From: Cyanophora paradoxa CCMP329
Lineage: Eukaryota; Plantae; Glaucophyta
DNA length: 64,000 bases
Assembly (NCBI GenBank): GCA_004431415.1
Contig: QPMI01000640.1
Span: 1-64,000, forward strand
Reading direction: 5' to 3'
In this document: positions 30,899-43,600 of the stretch, one piece after another
How positions within the stretch are numbered: the first letter of the stretch is position 1
Layout of the letters: every line of letters begins with the position of its first letter
Notes under the pieces: model-generated
The model's input: the letters and a program-made list of their open reading frames with translations, nothing else
The model's database searches: none
Told to the model about the DNA's origin: nothing
Program-made: the position numbers and the translations under genes

Positions 30899-33574
30899 AT
30901 GGGCCGCGACCGCGACGAAGAAGAGCGCCGCAGGCGCAAGGAGGAGAAGCGTGCGAAGAAAGAGAAGGAGAAGTGCGCACCGCCCCCGCCGTCAGCTGTA
31001 CACCGCCTCGCTAAACCACGACAGGAAGCGGAGCAAGCTTGATGAGACGCCGGAGGAGCGGCGTGCACGGCGCCTCGCGAAGAAGCAGAAGAAGGTGCGC
31101 GCTCGCCCCGCGCCGCCAGTAACATTGGCGAATGTGTGTACGCAGGAGGCGAAGCGGGCGGAGAAGGAGCGGTCCAGCAAGAAGGAGGACAAGTCCTTCT
31201 TCGGATACACGAACGATAACAACCCGTTCGGCGACTCGAACCTCAAGGAGCAGTTCGTGTGGAAAAAGAAGAACGAGAAGCTGGTTGAGCTGGGCGTCGA
31301 CCCCCAAGCCCTGTCGAAGGAGCGCGAACGCCTTCGACGCGAGGAGCTTCGCGTGAGCGCATTCGCTGCAGCAGAATGGTTTCGGCTCGGGCTGACAGTG
31401 CCTGGCAGCGGGAGATTGACAAGGTCAAGAAGCGGCGTGAGGAGCGCGAGGAGGAGAAGATGCGGTGGGAGGAGGAGCGGGTGCGCGTTAGCTACTCCTC
31501 GTGCAATCCCTTTTTGCACTAGCGCTGACCGCGCGGCCGGGCAGTCGAGGCTCGCCCGGGAGCGCGAGGGAATGTCCTTCCAGGAGTGGGAGAAGAAGGA
31601 GGACGAGGTGCGGGCGCTCTTTGGCTCCGCTGCGTAAGCGAGGTTCCGAAACGTGCGGTGGGCCGGCGCAGTTCCACCTGAAGCAGGCGATCATCCGGTC
31701 GGAGATCCGCATCAAGGAAGGGCGCGCCAAGCCCATCGACATCATCGCCAAGAACCTGCACCTGGACAAGGTGCGGCAGGCGCCCGAGGCCTGCGGCGCC
31801 GGACCGACGGACGGCGGGGGGGCGTGCGTAGGACTTCGACATCGAGATGAACGAGCCGTACAAGATCTTCAAGGGCCTGCCGGTGGCGGAGATCGAGGAG
31901 CTGAAGGCGGACATCGCCACGCACCTCGAGCTCGACCAGGAGAAGGGCCACCGCGAGTTCTGGAATGTGCGCCGGACCCCGCCGCCGGCCCCGGCCCCGG
32001 CGCCCGCGCGGGGCGCCGGTCGAGGGCGGGGCGGGGGGCAGGCGATGATGGTCGTGTGCGAGGACGAGCTCGAGCAGGCGCGCCGCAGCGAGGAGCTCGA
32101 GCGCCAGGGTGCGCCGCCCCGCACTCTCCCCGCCCGCCAGAGTCGGCGGGGGCTGGGGGGGGGGGGGGGGGCAGGGACGCGGGGGGCGCCGTCGTCGTCG
32201 GGGGTGCACTCGGCGGTGGAGGGGGACATCGAGGGGATCTTCCGGGGCAAGTCGGCGCGGCAGCTGGCGGAGCTCGAGGGCCAGTGCCGCGACGAGATCG
32301 CCATCGGCCGCGGCGTCGACGTCGAGTACTGGGAGAACGTCTTGAAGAAGCTCTCCGTCTTCAAGGCGAAGGCGCTGCTGCGGGAGGTCCACGCCGGCCT
32401 CCTCAAGAAGCGCCTCGCCCAGCTCCAGCAGGAGCAGGCCCGCGCCTCCCGCGGCCGCGACCCCGAGCGCGAGGGGTCCGCCCCCCGCCCCCGCTCGCCG
32501 CCGGGAGCTGAGGGGGCGGGCAGGGGCAAGCGGCGGCGGGAGGACTCTTCCTCCTCCTCCTCCTCGAGCGGGGAGGAGAGCGAGCGGGAGCGCGGCGGGC
32601 GCCGCCGGCAGGCCGCCAGCGAGAGCGAGGGCGAGGGCCGCGCGGCGGCCGGCCCCTCGCGCGGCGGGTGGGAGGAGGAGGAGGAGGAGGAGGACGGCGG
32701 GCGGGGCGGGGCGGGGGCCGGGGGCACGCCGCCGGGGGCTTTCAGCCCGGTGCTGGAGAGCGGGGACGTGGGGGAGGCGGAGGTGGTGGACGAGGCGGAG
32801 GACCGGCGCCAGCTCGAGCAGCAGCGCGAGGCCATCCTCGCCCGCGAGCGGCACGCCCCTGGCCCCACCCCCGCCCCGCCGCGTTGCCAGCCCCCGCCCC
32901 TGACGCGCGGGGCGATGCGCGCGCAGGGAGAAGATGGCGGAGATCGCGGCGGCGGAGGAGGCGGCGCGGGTGTCGGCGGCGGGGCGGGCGGCGATGTCGC
33001 GGACGCGGTTCGTGAACGAGGACGAGCTGTACCGGATCGAGAGCGCGAAGCTGGCGGAGCGGGCGGAGGAGGGCGAGGTCTCCTTCGCGGACGAGGTGGC
33101 CGTGGAGGGGCAGCAGTACCGGTGGGAGGACAAGTACCGGCCCCGCCGCCCCCGCTACTTCAACCGCGTCCACACCGGCTTCGACTGGAACAAGTACAAC
33201 CAGACGCACTACGACCACGACAACCCGCCCCCGAAGATCGTCCAGGGCTACAAGTTCAACGTGCGCCCGCCCCGCGCCCCGGGCCGCCCCGCCGCGCGCT
33301 CCCTGCGCTGCGGGCGCGACGCGGGGCCTGGGCGCAGATCTTCTACCCGGACCTCATCGACAAGGCGAAGTCGCCGCAGTTCTTCATCGAGCCGGACACG
33401 ACGGAGGACACGGTGCTGCTGCGCTTCCACGCGGGGGCCCCCTACGAGGACGTCGCCTTCCGCATCGTCAACAAGGAGTGGGAGTACTCCCACAAGCGCG
33501 GCTTCAAGTGCACCTTCGAGCGCGGCATCTTCCACCTCTACTTCAACTTCAAGCGCTACCGCTACCGCCGCTAG
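30899..33574 (+). CDS. CACTIN: Cactin (spliceosomal)
   Basis: ETPEERRARRLAKK; GYTNDNNPFGDSNLKEQFVWKKK; FHLKQAIIRSEIRIKEGRAKPID; WEDKYRPRRPRYFNRVHTGFDWNKYNQTHYDHDNPPPKIVQGYKFN|IFYPDLIDK...FHLYFNFKRYRYRR*. Confidence 0.96.
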
Positions 33575-36700: not shown

Positions 36701-38773
36701 CACTCAGCGAGGGCGAGGGCCCGGCGGGAGGCGCGCGCCGTCGACGGCGGCGGCAGCCCAGCGGGCGAGGGCCTCCGGGGCCGTCCCCTCGTCCACGCCC
36801 AGCACCGCCCACGGCTGCTCCGCTTCCGCCTCCGCAGGCCCCGCCGCCGCCTCCTCCGCGGCCCCCGCCCCCGCCGTGCCGTCCCCCGCGGAAAGGAGGC
36901 GGTCGCCGGGGGCGTTGGGGAGCGCGGCGCCGCCCTCGCCGAGGGACGCCAGCGCCCGATCCTCCCCGGCGTCTGCCCGCCCCTCGGCCCCGCCCCCGCT
37001 CGAGGCGATGCGGCGCACGCGCGCGCACCCCGGTAGGAAAAGGGGAAGGGGGCGGAGGCCTGCCCGCCGACCTCCACCTGCACCCCCGTGAGCGGCCGGT
37101 CGCTCGGCCCGGCGAGCGGGGGCGGGCCTGGAGGGAGCGGGGCCGGCGGGAGAGGGCCGGCGGGGCGACGCAGGCGACCGTCTGGTGCGCAGCCGCGACG
37201 AAGGCCCCTGCCGCCCCGCTCGCCCGGGCGGCGCCGGCGGGGGGCGGAGCGGGGCGGGGAGGGGCACCGGGCAGGGGCGGCCGTCGAGGAGGATGCGGAC
37301 GGGGCGCCGTAGGGCCCATGTTCCACCCGGCCGCCACGAGGAGGCCGCCCTCGAGGGGCGGCGCGGCCACGGCGGCGACCTCCGGGGGCAGGTAGGCGAA
37401 GCGGGCGCGGGGCGAGGGGCGCGAGGCCCGCCCGAAGACGCGCACGAGGACCTCGTGGCCGGCCCCGATGCCCGGAGGCAGCGCGCACGCCAGGCTGTAG
37501 TGCGGGGCGGGGGCGGCCGGGGCAGGGCACGGGGCGCCGCCGACGCTGACCTCGCGCGCCTCGCCGGGCTCGAGCTCGGCCGGCCCGAGGCCGATGCCGT
37601 AGAGCTGGAGGGTGCCGCCGGCGGTGGGGGCGGGGGCGACGAGGGCGACCTCGGGCTCGGCGGCGGTGCGGACGGCGATGCGCATCTCGAGCCGCAGCGG
37701 GACGGCCGCCAGGCTCTTCACCACCAGGTAGAGGGCCTCCCCGGCCGGCGCCCCCGCCCGCACAGCCCCCCGCGCACCCTGCCGCACCGCCCCCGCCTTC
37801 ACGCTCCCCTCCTCTGCGCGCCCCGCCTCAGAGGGAGGGGCGGGGGCGGGGGGCGCGCGGGGGGCGCGGGGGCACCGTAGTAGGCGAGGGGGAGGCCGCC
37901 CTGGGCGCGCTCGACGTTGAAGGCGTCCGAGACGAAGACGGCGACGGGCCCCTCGGGGCTCGTCCCGAAGCTGTACGCCAGGTGGCACGGGCACGGGCCC
38001 CCCGAGGAGAAGAGGGCCACGCCGCCGGCCTCGAGCTCCTTCGCCGAGTGCGCGGCGCTCGTGATCTCCGCGTGGTGCGAGACGGCCACCGGCCGCCCCT
38101 CGCTCAGGTTCTCGATGACGACGATCAGCTGCTCCACCGGCTTCCCCAGCGCCGTCACGTCCACCGACACCATCCGCGTCTCCTGCGCGCCGCCCAGCGA
38201 GGCCGCGAGGCCGCTCAGGCGCCGCGCCGGAGGCGGGCCGGGTGGGGCCGGCGGCGGCGGCGCGGGCGGACCTCCCATGCGTCGAAGTACGAGAACTCCT
38301 TCCGCGCTTCGAAGAGCGCGAAGTTTGGCGGGTCCTGCCCGCCCCTGCGCTTAGCTATGACCGTGGACATGGGCGCCGGCCGCCGCGAGGCGCTTTTACA
38401 TGTGCAAGGCAGCGGCCAGCAGTCGACGGCACCGATAGACCCGTTGTGATTAAAAAAATTTAATTTATCGGAGGAGCGCGGCGGACCATCAGGTAGACCG
38501 TCACGTTGTCCTCCGCCATGAGAAGCATCGAGTAGAGGCACGGGCACGGCCCTGCGCGGGGCGGTGATCAGGAGCGGCTGGCACACGCTGCACACGGCGT
38601 ACGCGGGCGGCGCTACGCATACGAGCGGCGCATTCGCGGTCCGCACCATTCCGCAGGCTCACGTATAGGCCAGCGGGGACCTGCACCTCGTCCGCGGCGG
38701 CAAGCGCGGCGAGGAGCGCCAGCGCGACCGCCAATGCGAGGCCCAGCGCACCCGCCGCGCCGCTGGGCCGCAT
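33704..38773 (-). CDS. Secreted/lumenal multidomain protein: signal peptide, two GPCPC-containing repeats, two IPT/TIG-like domains, C-terminal GT-A (GT2-like) glycosyltransferase
   Basis: Signal MRPSGAAGALGLALAVALALLAALAAA/DEV; repeats PCPCLYSMLL..VTVYLM and GPCPCHLAYSF..VAVFVS; TIG PTAGGTLQLYGIGLG..VSVGGAPC..SLACALPPGIG..FAYLPPEV; GT PYLSIVV|VTRNDDYGG..LELVVVDWN..EWVGKNAGVRRARGEYVLVTNQDVLL..GDFLLAHGERWRAARGYPE. Confidence 0.65.
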
Positions 38774-38850
38774 GCTCGCAGGTCGGCAATTCCGGCTGCG
38801 GGATGCAATGTGGCGGGCCCTAGTCAAATTCGACCGGTACCCTGGCGCAG
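38774..38850. promoter_or_regulatory. 77-bp bidirectional promoter region between the IPT-GT gene and murB
   Basis: Divergent ATGs at 38773 (-) and 38851 (+). Confidence 0.5.
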
Positions 38851-40463
38851 ATGGCCGCTTTCGTGTCCGCGGGCCTTGCGAGGCCGCTGAGCACGTGCCG
38901 CGATGTTGGAGAGAGCAGCTTCGTCGGCTGCCCCGTACAGGAGCCCGCGAAGACGGCCCCTCGCAGCGCGGCCCGGACGCTCATCAGCTGGGTCGGCACG
39001 GCGCGTCCCCGCCGCGCATTCATTGCAAGAGCTTCCTCTGCATCACCCCAGCTTCCCGCCCACAGCCCAGTCGGTGCGTCGCTCTCCGTGTCTTTCGCGC
39101 CAAACCTGCCGCGGTGCAGCGGCGAAACCACGGCGCACTCTGAAGTGCCCCGTCGCGCGTACACGCAGCGTCGGGATCGGGGCTCGCCTCGCAGCTGCCC
39201 GCGGTGCGCGGCAAGTACCAGGATAACTACCCGCTGAGCAAGCTGACCTGGTTCGGCGTCGGCGGCCGTGCGGAGGTGCGAGGCTTATGCGGGCGGCAAT
39301 CCGCGGGGCGCGCATGCTCGCCCGAGCATCGCCCCCGCCGATCGGGCGGCGGGGGGGCGCAGGTGCTCTTCACGCCGGAGGACGAGGAGGACCTGGCGGA
39401 GTTCCTCGCGAAGAAGCCGGCCGGCGTGCCCGTGACGGTGATCGGCGTCGGGTCGAACCTGCTCGTCCGCGACGGCGGCGTCGACGGCGTCGTCGTCCGC
39501 ATGGGCAAGGTGCCCACCCCGCGCCCCTCGGCGCCCCCGCACGGGTGCCGAGGGCGGGCGGCGCAGGCATTCGCCGAGGTGCGCGTGGAGGGCGTGAACG
39601 TGACGGCCGGCGCCGCCGCCCTCGACCTCAACGTCTCCAAGGCCTGCCGCGGTGCCCGGCCCCGCCCCCGCCCGCCCCGCCCCGTGTCGAGGCGAGCGGC
39701 GGGGCAGACGCCGGCGTGGCGGGCTTCGAGTTCCTGAGCGGGATCCCCGGGACGGTGGGCGGGATGCTGAAGATGAACGCGGGGGCGTACGGGGACGATG
39801 CCTCGAAGGTGGTGTTGAGCGCGCGGGCGGTGGACCCGCAGGGGACCCTCCGCGAGCTCCTCCCCGCCGACCTCGGCTTCTCCTACCGCCACAGCGCCGT
39901 CCCCGACGGTCCCCCCGCCCCGCCCCGCCCGCCCCGCCACGCTCGAGCGCGCGGGTACGCAGGCTGGGTCTTCGTGTCGGCGCGGATGGCGGGGCGGGCG
40001 GACAGCGTGGAGGCGATCGCGGGGCGGATGGCGAAGATCCAGGCGGACCGGGAGGCGTCGCAGCCGATCCGGAGCCGCACGGGGGGCTCCACCTTCGCCA
40101 ACCCCCCCAACGAGCAGGGCCTCCGCGCCTGGCAGCTCGTCGACGCCGTCGGCGGCCGCGGCCTCCGCAGGGGCGGCGCCATGGTGCCCGCCCCGCGCCG
40201 CCTGGCTCCGGGCGGGAGGGTGGTGAGGGGCGTCGGGGCGCAGATCTCGGAGAAGCACTGCAACTTCATGATCAACACGGGGGACGCCAGCGCCGCCGAC
40301 CTCGAGGACCTCGGCGACGAGATCATCCGGTCCGCCCCGCACGCTCAGCGCGCGACCCCTCGCCCCGACTCACAGCCGGCCGGCCCCGCCCGCCAGCCGC
40401 GTGCGGGAGCAGTTCGGCATCGAGATGCGGTGGGAGATCCAGAGGATAGGCAAGCGCCTCTAG
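38851..40463 (+). CDS. murB: UDP-N-acetylenolpyruvoylglucosamine reductase with N-terminal plastid transit peptide
   Basis: Transit peptide [30 protein letters not shown]. Mature part [11 protein letters not shown]|[81 protein letters not shown]. Several spliceosomal introns; stop 40461-40463. Confidence 0.95.
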
Positions 40464-40618
40464 CTCGACGCAGACGCCGCTCATTGCTCTTCATGTTACC
40501 GAGAACGAAACCCGATGACATCGATCATGAACGCCTTGATGCTGCACCACGAGCGATCAAATTTGGGGGGTCGGAGTCTCGGGGGATCCGGGGGGAAGGA
40601 GTCGGGGATACGGCAAAG

Positions 40619-43600
40619 ATGGCGAGCCGACGGGACGCCGCGGGCCAGGCCGCGCAGCACCCGGTTTTCTCCAAGATACGAGCACCGCGAATCGATAGCT
40701 CGAGCACGAACCTTGCCGCGGTATCGGGCGACTGGGTTTACACATACGGCGACGATGGCGACAATGGCACGGCCCTTTACTGCGCGGACATCAAGCGCCT
40801 CAACAGCCGCAGCGTAGAGGCGCGCCGCTCGCTTTGCTCCGCCCGTGGCGCTCACGTTCGTGCAGACCATTCGGCTGGAGCCGCCGCCGGACTTTCAGGT
40901 GCTGCAGCTGCTGCTGAACAGCACCGGCGAATATGCTGCCTTCGTGGGCGAGCGCCAGATCTACGTCGGCTTCGTCAAGCGGCCGCACGGCGCCGCGCGG
41001 CCTCACAAGTCGGGCGCGAGCGAGCCGAGCTTCTGCCGGTGCGGGCGCGTGGCACATTGCGCCCGCGGACGAGCGGCTGAGGCGTCGCGGGGACAGGACG
41101 GTGCCGCTTGGGGAGGAGTACCTGGAGGCGGCGATCGTGCAGGCGGCGTGGCACCCGCTGAGCGAGTCGCACCTCGCCGTCCTCTCCGACGACGGCCTCC
41201 TCCGGTCGGCCCGCACGCGCCCTCGCCTGCCCCCGCCGAGGCTCACCTCCGCGCGGCAGCCTCTTCGACCTCTCGCGGGACCTCTACGAGCCGGAGCAGA
41301 CCATCTCCGCCCGCGCCGTCGGCGGCCAGCCGGACGCGCGCCCCGCCGGCCCCGGCCCCGCCGCCTCTGCGCTGGCTCGTGACGCGGGGCGGCGCGCAGG
41401 GCGGGGAAGAGGAGGGGCCGGAGGAGATCGAGGGGGACCGGGTGGTGGCGTTCGAGTTCGGGGCGGCGCGCGGCTGGGAGGCCTTCGCCCTCTACTTCCT
41501 CTACGCCTCCGGCGACCTCCGCGCCCTCTGCCCCGTAGTCCCCTACGGCGGGTCCGCCTCCCGCCTTGGCCTCCGCCGGCGCGGGGCGGGGCTGACGCTG
41601 GCGGGGGCAGGCGGGTGCCGGTGTCGCTGCTGACGGGGCTGTGCGACGGGCTGCGGGAGGGCGTCGGGGCGGCCCCCGCCGGCAGCCTGCCCCGCCAGGT
41701 CCGCTGGCAGCTCCACTGGCTCGCCGAGATCGCCGGTGCGTTGCCGGCCAGCCGCAGCGCGGCACCGCGCCGGCTGCGAGCGGGCGGGGCCAGGGTGCGG
41801 GCCGGCGGGGCGGATGAGACGGCGGACCTCTCCCTGGAGGCCCTGCGCGCCCTCTTCCTCGCCGCCGCCAAGCGGCCCCGCCCCGCCGCCCCCGCCCGCC
41901 CCCGCGCCCCGCTCGGCGCCCCCCACGTCGAGCCCCCGCTGAGCGCGCCGCCGGGGCCGGCTTCTTCCGGACGCGGCCGCCGAGCCTGGCGAGCCGGGTC
42001 TCGCGGCGGGGCCTGGAGCTGCAGGGCCCGTTCGCGTACGAGCGGCTGAACCCGGCGCCGGCGCTCGAGGAGGGGGCCTACGTGGCGCTGGCGCGCGTCG
42101 GGGCGGGGCCGCCGGCGCTCGCCTGCGCCACGCGCGAGGGCCGCCTGCGCCTCCTCGTCGCCCTCGAGGAGCTCGCCCCCCGCTGGCTCGACGACGTCCG
42201 CCCCGCCCCGCCCCGCCCCGCCCCGCCACCGCCCAAGCTCACACCCGCCCAGCGCGACGCGGCCGCCGAGGAGGAGGCCCCGCCCCCCGCCCTGCTTCTC
42301 GTCGAGACCCTCGAGCTCCCGTGCCCCTCCCCCGCCCTCTTCCCCGACCCGACCTACCGGTGCCCCCGCCCCGCCCCCCCGCCGGCGCCTTTGGCGCTAA
42401 GCGGTGGGGGCAGGGAGCGGGTGTACGTGCGGCACGGGCGGGGGGTGCACTGCGTGCAGCTGCCGTGGCTGGCGGCGCTGCAGGCCTTTCTGCGCGACGC
42501 CGAGGCCGGCGCCCCGGGCCGCCTCCCCGAGCTGCCCCCGGCCCTCCCCTTCCCCCTCCTCCACACCGCCCGCCCCGGGCCCCTCCCCGCCGCCCTCGTC
42601 CTCAGCGACCCCGTCGCCGGGTACATGCTCCTCGCCGTCACCCGCGAGGGGCGGCCCCTCGGCGTGCCCCTCGCCTCCACCCTCGCCACCTGGGCCCCCG
42701 CCCCGCAGCTCGCCCTCGCCCCGCTGCCCCTGCCCCTCCCCGCCCCCGCCCCCGCCCCCGCCCCAGCACGCCGGGCCCAGCCACGCCGGCGCGCGGGGCG
42801 GAGGGGCGCTGGAGGGCCCCGCGGGGCGGTGCCGCCCCTCTCCCGCCTCCTCGAGCCCCTCCTCAGCCCCCAGCGCCGCGCCGCCCGCCGCGCCGCCGCC
42901 CTCGCCCCGCCCCAGCCCCCGCCCCCTCCGGTGCGGCGGGCCCCTTCCCCCCCTTGCCCGCCCGGGCGTGGGCGACGGGGCGCAGGGGCGCGACGGACGG
43001 GACGCTGGAGTGGCTGCAGAAGTGCGTGGGGCGATGAAGGAGGGGTACGTGGTGGACCTCACGCGGGTGTGCGAGGAGACGCTGGGGCGGCTGGAGCTGC
43101 TGGAGGGCGTCGAGGTGCACCAGAACGGCCAGCTCGAGGCCCTCCACGCCCGCGTCCGCGCCCCGCCCGCCCCGCGCCCCCGCCCCCGCGCCCCGCGCCG
43201 AGGCCGCGGGGCAGCTCGAGGGCCTCGACGGGCGCGCCGAGCGCCTCGAGGAGGCCGTGCGCCGCGCCTCCGCCCGCCAGGAGCAGCTCGCCGCCCGCGC
43301 CCACGCCGCCCTCCGCGCCCTCACCCGCGCCCGGTCCCCGCTCCCACCCCGCCCCGCCCCTGCCCCCGCCGCTCACGGGGGGCAGGCCGCCGGAGGCGTC
43401 GGAGGCGGAGAAGGAGTGGAGGGGCCGGCTGGAGCAGCGGCGGGAGGCGTGCGGGAAGTTCGAGGAGCGCCTCAACGCCGTCGAGCGCCGCGCCGGCCGC
43501 GCCGGCCTCCTCTTCCCCCGCCCCGCCGGGAACGGCGCCGTCCCCGTGGCGCTCCCCGTGGGGAGCGGGGGCGCCGAGGCGGGCGGGGGCGCGCTCTCGG

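Follow-up and report, generated by a model that had tools for sequence, protein, structure and literature searches.

A spliced nuclear murB gene of alphaproteobacterial type with a predicted plastid presequence in the glaucophyte Cyanophora paradoxa

The peptidoglycan pathway of the glaucophyte Cyanophora paradoxa has been called chimeric (Price et al. 2019, PMC6704402, section 3.5). Its PBP1/2, FtsI, MurA, MurF, MraY, and VanY are cyanobacterial, and the one MurB listed for the improved assembly, tig00021493_g21858.t1, was assigned the origin “Alpha Proteobacteria (99%)” with Novispirillum itersonii (Rhodospirillales) as its best match (PMC6704402 Table S7). For this species, a plastid wall pathway that is chimeric and includes a MurB of alphaproteobacterial origin has been on record since 2019 (PMC6704402). 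It has also been reported that murB is up-regulated ~8 h after light (PMC6704402). The portions of that text considered here contain neither an exon-level description nor a transit-peptide analysis of MurB. In green plants, the peptidoglycan enzymes have been reported to be mostly of non-cyanobacterial origin (Sato and Takano 2017, as cited in PMC6946739 and PMC9434261).

The bacterial counterparts are the type II MurB enzymes encoded in alphaproteobacterial cell-wall/division (dcw) clusters (Thalassobaculum, Pacificispira, Kiloniellaceae, Ferrovibrio; L001-L080), which share 55-60% identity with the Cyanophora protein (~300 residues). Their domains and catalytic Arg/Ser/Glu agree with those of the Cyanophora protein, as do the motifs LPx... 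and SEKHCNF-INTG. The bacterial genes have no introns and no N-terminal extension and lie between murC and ddl (locus order ftsW-murC-murB-ddl-ftsQ-ftsA), whereas the Cyanophora gene has 7 introns and an 84-aa presequence.

For plastid precursors, the closest described system is the cyanelle of Cyanophora itself. TAILS N-terminal proteomics of cyanelles has proven precursors which start MAAFVAGAQA, MAFVAPIVAV, and MAAFACGVPV and whose mature ends lie at residues 71-76 (PMC4510345). Phe is over-represented among the first 10 residues of cyanelle precursors (PMC4510345, Table 1). The main text of that paper says nothing about MurB.

The gene considered here lies in contig QPMI01000640.1 of C. 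paradoxa CCMP329; the window is the whole 64-kb stretch of DNA that was analysed. It is most probably the very same gene as tig00021493_g21858.t1, which is likewise nuclear, a single glaucophyte MurB, of the same alphaproteobacterial origin and with a best match in Rhodospirillales. Added here are an exon-exact and RNA-verified gene model, a presequence matching the proven cyanelle precursors, and an orthologue from Gloeochaete that would date the acquisition.

Gene structure, transcription, and surroundings

The murB model was built by hand and translated. It spans 38851-40463 (+), with 8 exons, 7 introns, and a 378-aa product, and runs from the ATG at 38851, the first start codon of the ORF, to the TAG stop at 40461-40463. 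Its features are the following.

38851-39073, + strand: exon 1, start codon and the greater part of the predicted transit peptide; RNA contigs join 39073 to 39169 (X1, X3, X8)
39074-39168, + strand: intron 1, 95 nt, GTGCGT..CGCAG, phase 1; a joint skipping 95 nt occurs in three runs
39169-39275, + strand: exon 2, last part of the extension, then the beginning of the MurB homology (LPAVRGKY...WFGVGGRAE); supported by RNA joints and the alignment with bacterial MurB
39363-39509, + strand: exon 3, first part of the FAD-binding domain; Pfam FAD_binding_4, RNA joints on both sides
39567-39651, + strand: exon 4; RNA joints skip 57 and 56 nt
39708-39908, + strand: exon 5, GIPGTVGG and MNAGAYG motifs, putative catalytic Arg248 (GFSYRHS)
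39963-40183, + strand: exon 6, MurB_C domain, putative catalytic Ser297 (TGGSTFANP)
40244-40329, + strand: exon 7, sequence motif; RNA joints skip 60 and 67 nt
40397-40463, + strand: exon 8, C-terminus, putative catalytic Glu370 (RWEIQRIG), TAG stop
40464-40526 at least, + strand: 3′ untranslated region; the X1 RNA contig ends at 40526

The introns measure 95, 87, 57, 56, 54, 60, and 67 nt in order; all are GT-AG, and most start with GTGC and end with GCAG. Transcription agrees with the model in detail. The X1 RNA contig (1198 nt) corresponds to 38853-40526 minus 476 nt of introns, in exact agreement, and the spliced form is found in contigs of three studies (X1, X3, X8) with joints at the intron borders of the model. 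Intron 5 (39909-39962) lies in a short repeat and is absent from the listed RNA joints; in the record, 3 letters separate the contig pieces on its two sides (39707-39904 and 39962-40182), a spacing which fits an intron of 54 nt. In public runs of one organism, roughly half of the words of this stretch are present, in keeping with spliced RNA, and a 2012 run (X16) carries the unspliced genomic DNA form. A reading made from the sequence alone had proposed a complete MurB split by spliceosomal introns, with the N-terminal exon spliced to the MurB exons. The exact coordinates, the Pfam domains, and the spliced RNA contigs bear this out, the joint between exon 1 and exon 2 being present in all three studies; all the peptide segments that the sequence-only reading quoted are contained in the spliced product.

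One further joint, 39681/40149, is probably not an alternative splice form. It is anchored by only 20 letters and includes 39 foreign ones (a GCCGGCTCGAGCTCC-like repeat), and its most likely source is a low-complexity GC repeat located elsewhere.

The whole window is very GC-rich (GC 0.56-0.83 per 2 kb) and the murB stretch is alike; the GC3 of the coding sequence, 0.93, is the same as in the rest of the window. The murB introns are free of stop codons, which lets spurious long ORFs continue through them in both orientations. Two such stop-free frames overlap the gene, 39227-40342 (-), an antisense frame of 371 aa, and 39287-41080 (+), a frame of 597 aa which reads through the introns; both are by-products of the high GC3 and the GC-rich introns. 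The phenomenon of reverse-strand ORFs was discussed by Price et al. 2019, who found no transcription of such ORFs (PMC6704402).

The murB gene stands alone in the window, without bacterial dcw neighbours. About 5 kb upstream, two domains of Cactin, a spliceosome-associated protein of eukaryotes, are encoded in the ORF 31847-33574 (+): Cactin_mid (E 1e-30) and CactinC_cactus (E 3e-32). The proximity of this gene confirms the nuclear context of murB. A divergent neighbour lies at 38646-38818 (-), within the ORF 38501-38827 (-); its likely start, MRPSGAAGALGLALAVALALLAALAAA..., resembles a signal peptide. The murB RNA contigs begin at 38842-38853, around the ATG, and the divergent minus-strand RNA contig ends at 38818, ~25-35 nt from the first murB transcript bases, which points to a very short bidirectional promoter region common to both genes. 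On the other side, the next transcribed gene (40591-40700 onward, +; ORF 40845-41633) starts ~65-130 nt past the 3′ end of murB, with RNA contigs beginning at 40591 and 40611; its 262-aa ORF has no Pfam match.

The possibility that murB is a bacterial contaminant or a mis-assembly has next to no probability and was rejected on the introns and the spliced RNA: seven spliceosomal introns are removed in the RNA of three studies. Also against it are the GC3 value common to the window, the flanking eukaryotic Cactin gene and other transcribed genes, the predicted transit peptide, and the absence of neighbouring dcw cluster genes.

The MurB protein and its presequence

Two Pfam domains were recognized in the exon read-throughs. 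The N-terminal FAD_binding_4 domain (PCMH-type) is found as two halves, with E 1.5e-5 and 1.3e-8, the single scores being near the cut-off because each piece is split by introns in the read-throughs; the C-terminal substrate-binding domain MurB_C scores 71.2 bits against a cut-off of 27. The mature part aligns with bacterial MurB over the full length. In the spliced model, R248, S297, and E370 correspond to R159, S229, and E325, the catalytic residues of E. coli MurB, and the three are also present in all the bacterial sequences compared. At the position of E. coli Y190 the Cyanophora protein has a gap; because the Tyr190 loop is absent, together with the extra type I segment, the protein is assigned to type II.

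Comparison with solved structures gives the same picture. The closest is 9DTK chain A (E 3e-33), and type II entries of the PDB score far better than type I entries. The solved type II enzymes (9DTK, 4PYT, 3TX1 from Listeria, 1HSK from S. aureus, and 2GQT from Thermus) belong to the same fold family and are all bacterial, whereas the type I MurB of E. coli and Pseudomonas is much more distant (E ~1e-6). Judged by its sequence, the Cyanophora protein is a complete type II MurB, with predicted activity as UDP-N-acetylenolpyruvoylglucosamine reductase (EC 1.3.1.98), which reduces UDP-GlcNAc-enolpyruvate with NADPH.

Ahead of the homologous part, the protein carries an extension of 84 aa before LPAVRG. 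It is rich in Ala, Ser, Arg, and Pro (A16 S13 R8 P8), S+T+A+R+P amount to 58%, and it has 3 acidic and 9 basic residues. Phe stands at position 4, i.e., within the first 10 residues. The extension of ~85 aa, Ser/Arg/Ala-rich and starting MAAF, that had been noticed earlier is thus found in the spliced product with nearly the same length. Its N-terminus resembles those of the proven cyanelle precursors MAAFVAGAQA and MAAFACGVPV (PMC4510345). The presequence fits the class of glaucophyte muroplast (cyanelle) precursors well, in which the Ser/Ala-rich extension has few acidic residues and exceeds the bacterial homologues by ~60-80 aa, and import of MurB into the plastid is predicted.

The transcript of Gloeochaete wittrockiana (MMETSP1089; EukProt EP00276_P015036; P0001/P0121, L081) encodes a MurB with 65% identity to that of Cyanophora. 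It is monocistronic and AT-rich, with untranslated flanks. The Cyanophora protein has a small insertion (NEQGLR) after FANPP, and it has GGRGLR versus the bacterial GCRGLR; both traits are present in Gloeochaete as well. The Gloeochaete ORF has only ~20 residues before LPAVRG, with in-frame stops upstream, and its transit peptide may have been lost from this record by a frameshift, a retained intron, or mis-assembly. Positions 1-210 of the same transcript hold a separate upstream ORF in another frame, starting MFHF.

Relatives and origin of the gene

The nearest relatives were sought by a word search over 5.8 billion proteins, in which the query was the exon read-through 39710-40462 (+) and not the joined spliced model. 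Translation, local alignments, and trees were based on the joined model. It yielded 6795 MurB proteins at E <= 1e-5. The best match is a eukaryotic transcript (P0001), whose cluster mate P0121 is the Gloeochaete sequence mentioned above, and among eukaryotes only glaucophytes showed such a murB gene in this search. Among the best 120 matches, seven bacteria are named and all seven are Alphaproteobacteria (Rhodospirillaceae, Telmatospirillum, Oceanibacterium, Micavibrio). A scan of one genome per species was made with the patterns MNAGAYGx[ED] and TGGSTF[AR]NP, which are alpha-like and biased towards such sequences; nearly all of the best 80 of its 597 confirmed loci have alphaproteobacterial record titles. 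Four of the 80 are titled Mycobacteriaceae, Pseudobdellovibrionaceae (two), and Bdellovibrionales, and these sit among the others in the tree. A tblastn search of PLSDB matched Alphaproteobacteria, Firmicutes, Actinobacteria, Fusobacterium, Stenotrophomonas, Burkholderia, and Neisseria, and no cyanobacterium.

The identity of Cyanophora MurB to Rhodospirillales sequences has a median of 57% and a maximum of 60%; other alphaproteobacterial orders show 52-58% to Rhodospirillales, and identity of Cyanophora MurB to the outgroups (Firmicutes, Actinobacteria) is 32-38%. The sequence-only reading had called this MurB alphaproteobacterial and not cyanobacterial. The first half of that statement is upheld by the seven named matches and the median identity to Rhodospirillales; the second half agrees with the match lists and with the published tree (PMC6704402 Table S7).

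It is hardly credible that the alphaproteobacterial look is an artefact of similarity or phylogeny and that the gene is really the cyanobacterial murB of the endosymbiont. Our own tree was made without cyanobacterial sequences and the scan patterns are alpha-biased, which would leave room for such a reading; however, the only bacterial names in the best 120 matches from 5.8 billion proteins are alphaproteobacterial, the published and broadly sampled tree gives 99% for an alphaproteobacterial origin (PMC6704402), and long signature motifs are common to Cyanophora MurB and alphaproteobacterial sequences.

An ordinary endosymbiotic gene transfer would account for the nuclear gene if the cyanobacterial ancestor of the plastid had already possessed an alpha-type murB, obtained from another bacterium. 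Price et al. considered it possible that the plastid donor had a mixed set of genes (PMC6704402), and the gene is old enough to be common to Cyanophora and Gloeochaete. Such a history is nevertheless unlikely: it requires an extra transfer and an unobserved donor lineage, and no cyanobacterium is found among the nearest matches, i.e., the best 120 of the word search and the best 80 genome loci retrieved with the alpha-like patterns.

Phylogenetic trees were built from the MurB sequences of the 80 loci (extracted with an HMM), the spliced model, and the Gloeochaete sequence, with MurB of Bacillus velezensis, Listeria, Collinsella, and Acetoanaerobium (PLSDB records) as outgroups. E. coli MurB (L082) was rejected as an outgroup, being of type I and giving a partial alignment only (49.8 bits); it was left out of the trees and served only for mapping the catalytic residues. 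In this sampling, which is without cyanobacterial, streptophyte, Paulinella, or other proteobacterial type II MurB, Cyanophora and Gloeochaete form a clade with an SH-aLRT of 99 in the 99-row quick tree (LG+C20 PMSF), of 99 again in the 35-row quick PMSF tree, and with a support of 100/99 in the 35-row careful tree (LG+G4). With Gloeochaete as its sister at a support of 99-100, the Cyanophora gene would be older than the split between the two genera.

The glaucophyte pair is placed among alphaproteobacterial sequences, and in one tree only it is sister to Thalassobaculaceae (SH-aLRT 87). An AU test (p 0.52) did not reject the alternative in which all the sampled Alphaproteobacteria are monophyletic to the exclusion of the glaucophytes. 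A maximum-likelihood tree had been proposed earlier as a check of the origin; the trees built here sustain the sister position of Gloeochaete and are compatible with a placement of the pair either inside or just outside the sampled Alphaproteobacteria. In sum, Cyanophora murB is by its sequence relationships of alphaproteobacterial type, and its donor lineage would lie within, or next to, the Alphaproteobacteria.

The outside placement is one that a relic of the mitochondrial (alphaproteobacterial) endosymbiont might take, a gene that stayed in the nucleus and was only afterwards redirected to the plastid; if this were true, the wall of one organelle would be built with a gene from the ancestor of the other. 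We regard it as very improbable. In the searches, such a gene is present only in glaucophytes. Between the origin of mitochondria and that of plastids it would have had to persist with no peptidoglycan substrate at hand, and every other eukaryote would have had to lose it afterwards. Furthermore, 57% identity to Rhodospirillales is within the ordinary divergence between orders (52-58%), and neither the 99-row nor the 35-row quick tree shows any affinity of glaucophyte MurB to Rickettsiales.

A wall pathway that is chimeric, with one step supplied by horizontal transfer, had also been proposed from the sequence, and this is what Price et al. 2019 reported (PMC6704402). MurC offers a related lead. 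The best match of C. paradoxa MurC is Oceanibaculum, also Rhodospirillales, and the genes for MurC and MurG are six gene numbers apart on one contig (PMC6704402 Table S7). In alphaproteobacterial dcw clusters murC is directly upstream of murB (L005), and the two genes may have been transferred together from a single donor, a hypothesis that can be tested.

A mosaic pathway in the muroplast

The evidence makes it quite likely that the single nuclear murB of C. paradoxa is an alphaproteobacterial-type gene whose product is imported into the plastid, and that it was acquired by horizontal transfer and replaced the murB of the endosymbiont. The acquisition, into the nucleus of a glaucophyte ancestor, most likely preceded the split between Cyanophora and Gloeochaete. 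In the present-day cell, an mRNA spliced from 8 exons would direct the cytosolic synthesis of a precursor with a Phe-type transit peptide of 70-85 aa, which would be imported into the peptidoglycan-walled plastid (muroplast) and then processed. In that compartment, MurB is predicted to be a FAD/NADPH-dependent reductase of type II that supplies UDP-MurNAc, one step after a cyanobacterial-type MurA in the pathway.

On this evidence, the plastid of most ancestral appearance makes its peptidoglycan by a mosaic pathway, with MurA, MurF, MraY, and the penicillin-binding proteins of cyanobacterial origin and MurB from an alphaproteobacterial source. This mosaic bears on the extent to which plastid functions have been rebuilt by horizontal transfer as opposed to being inherited from the endosymbiont.
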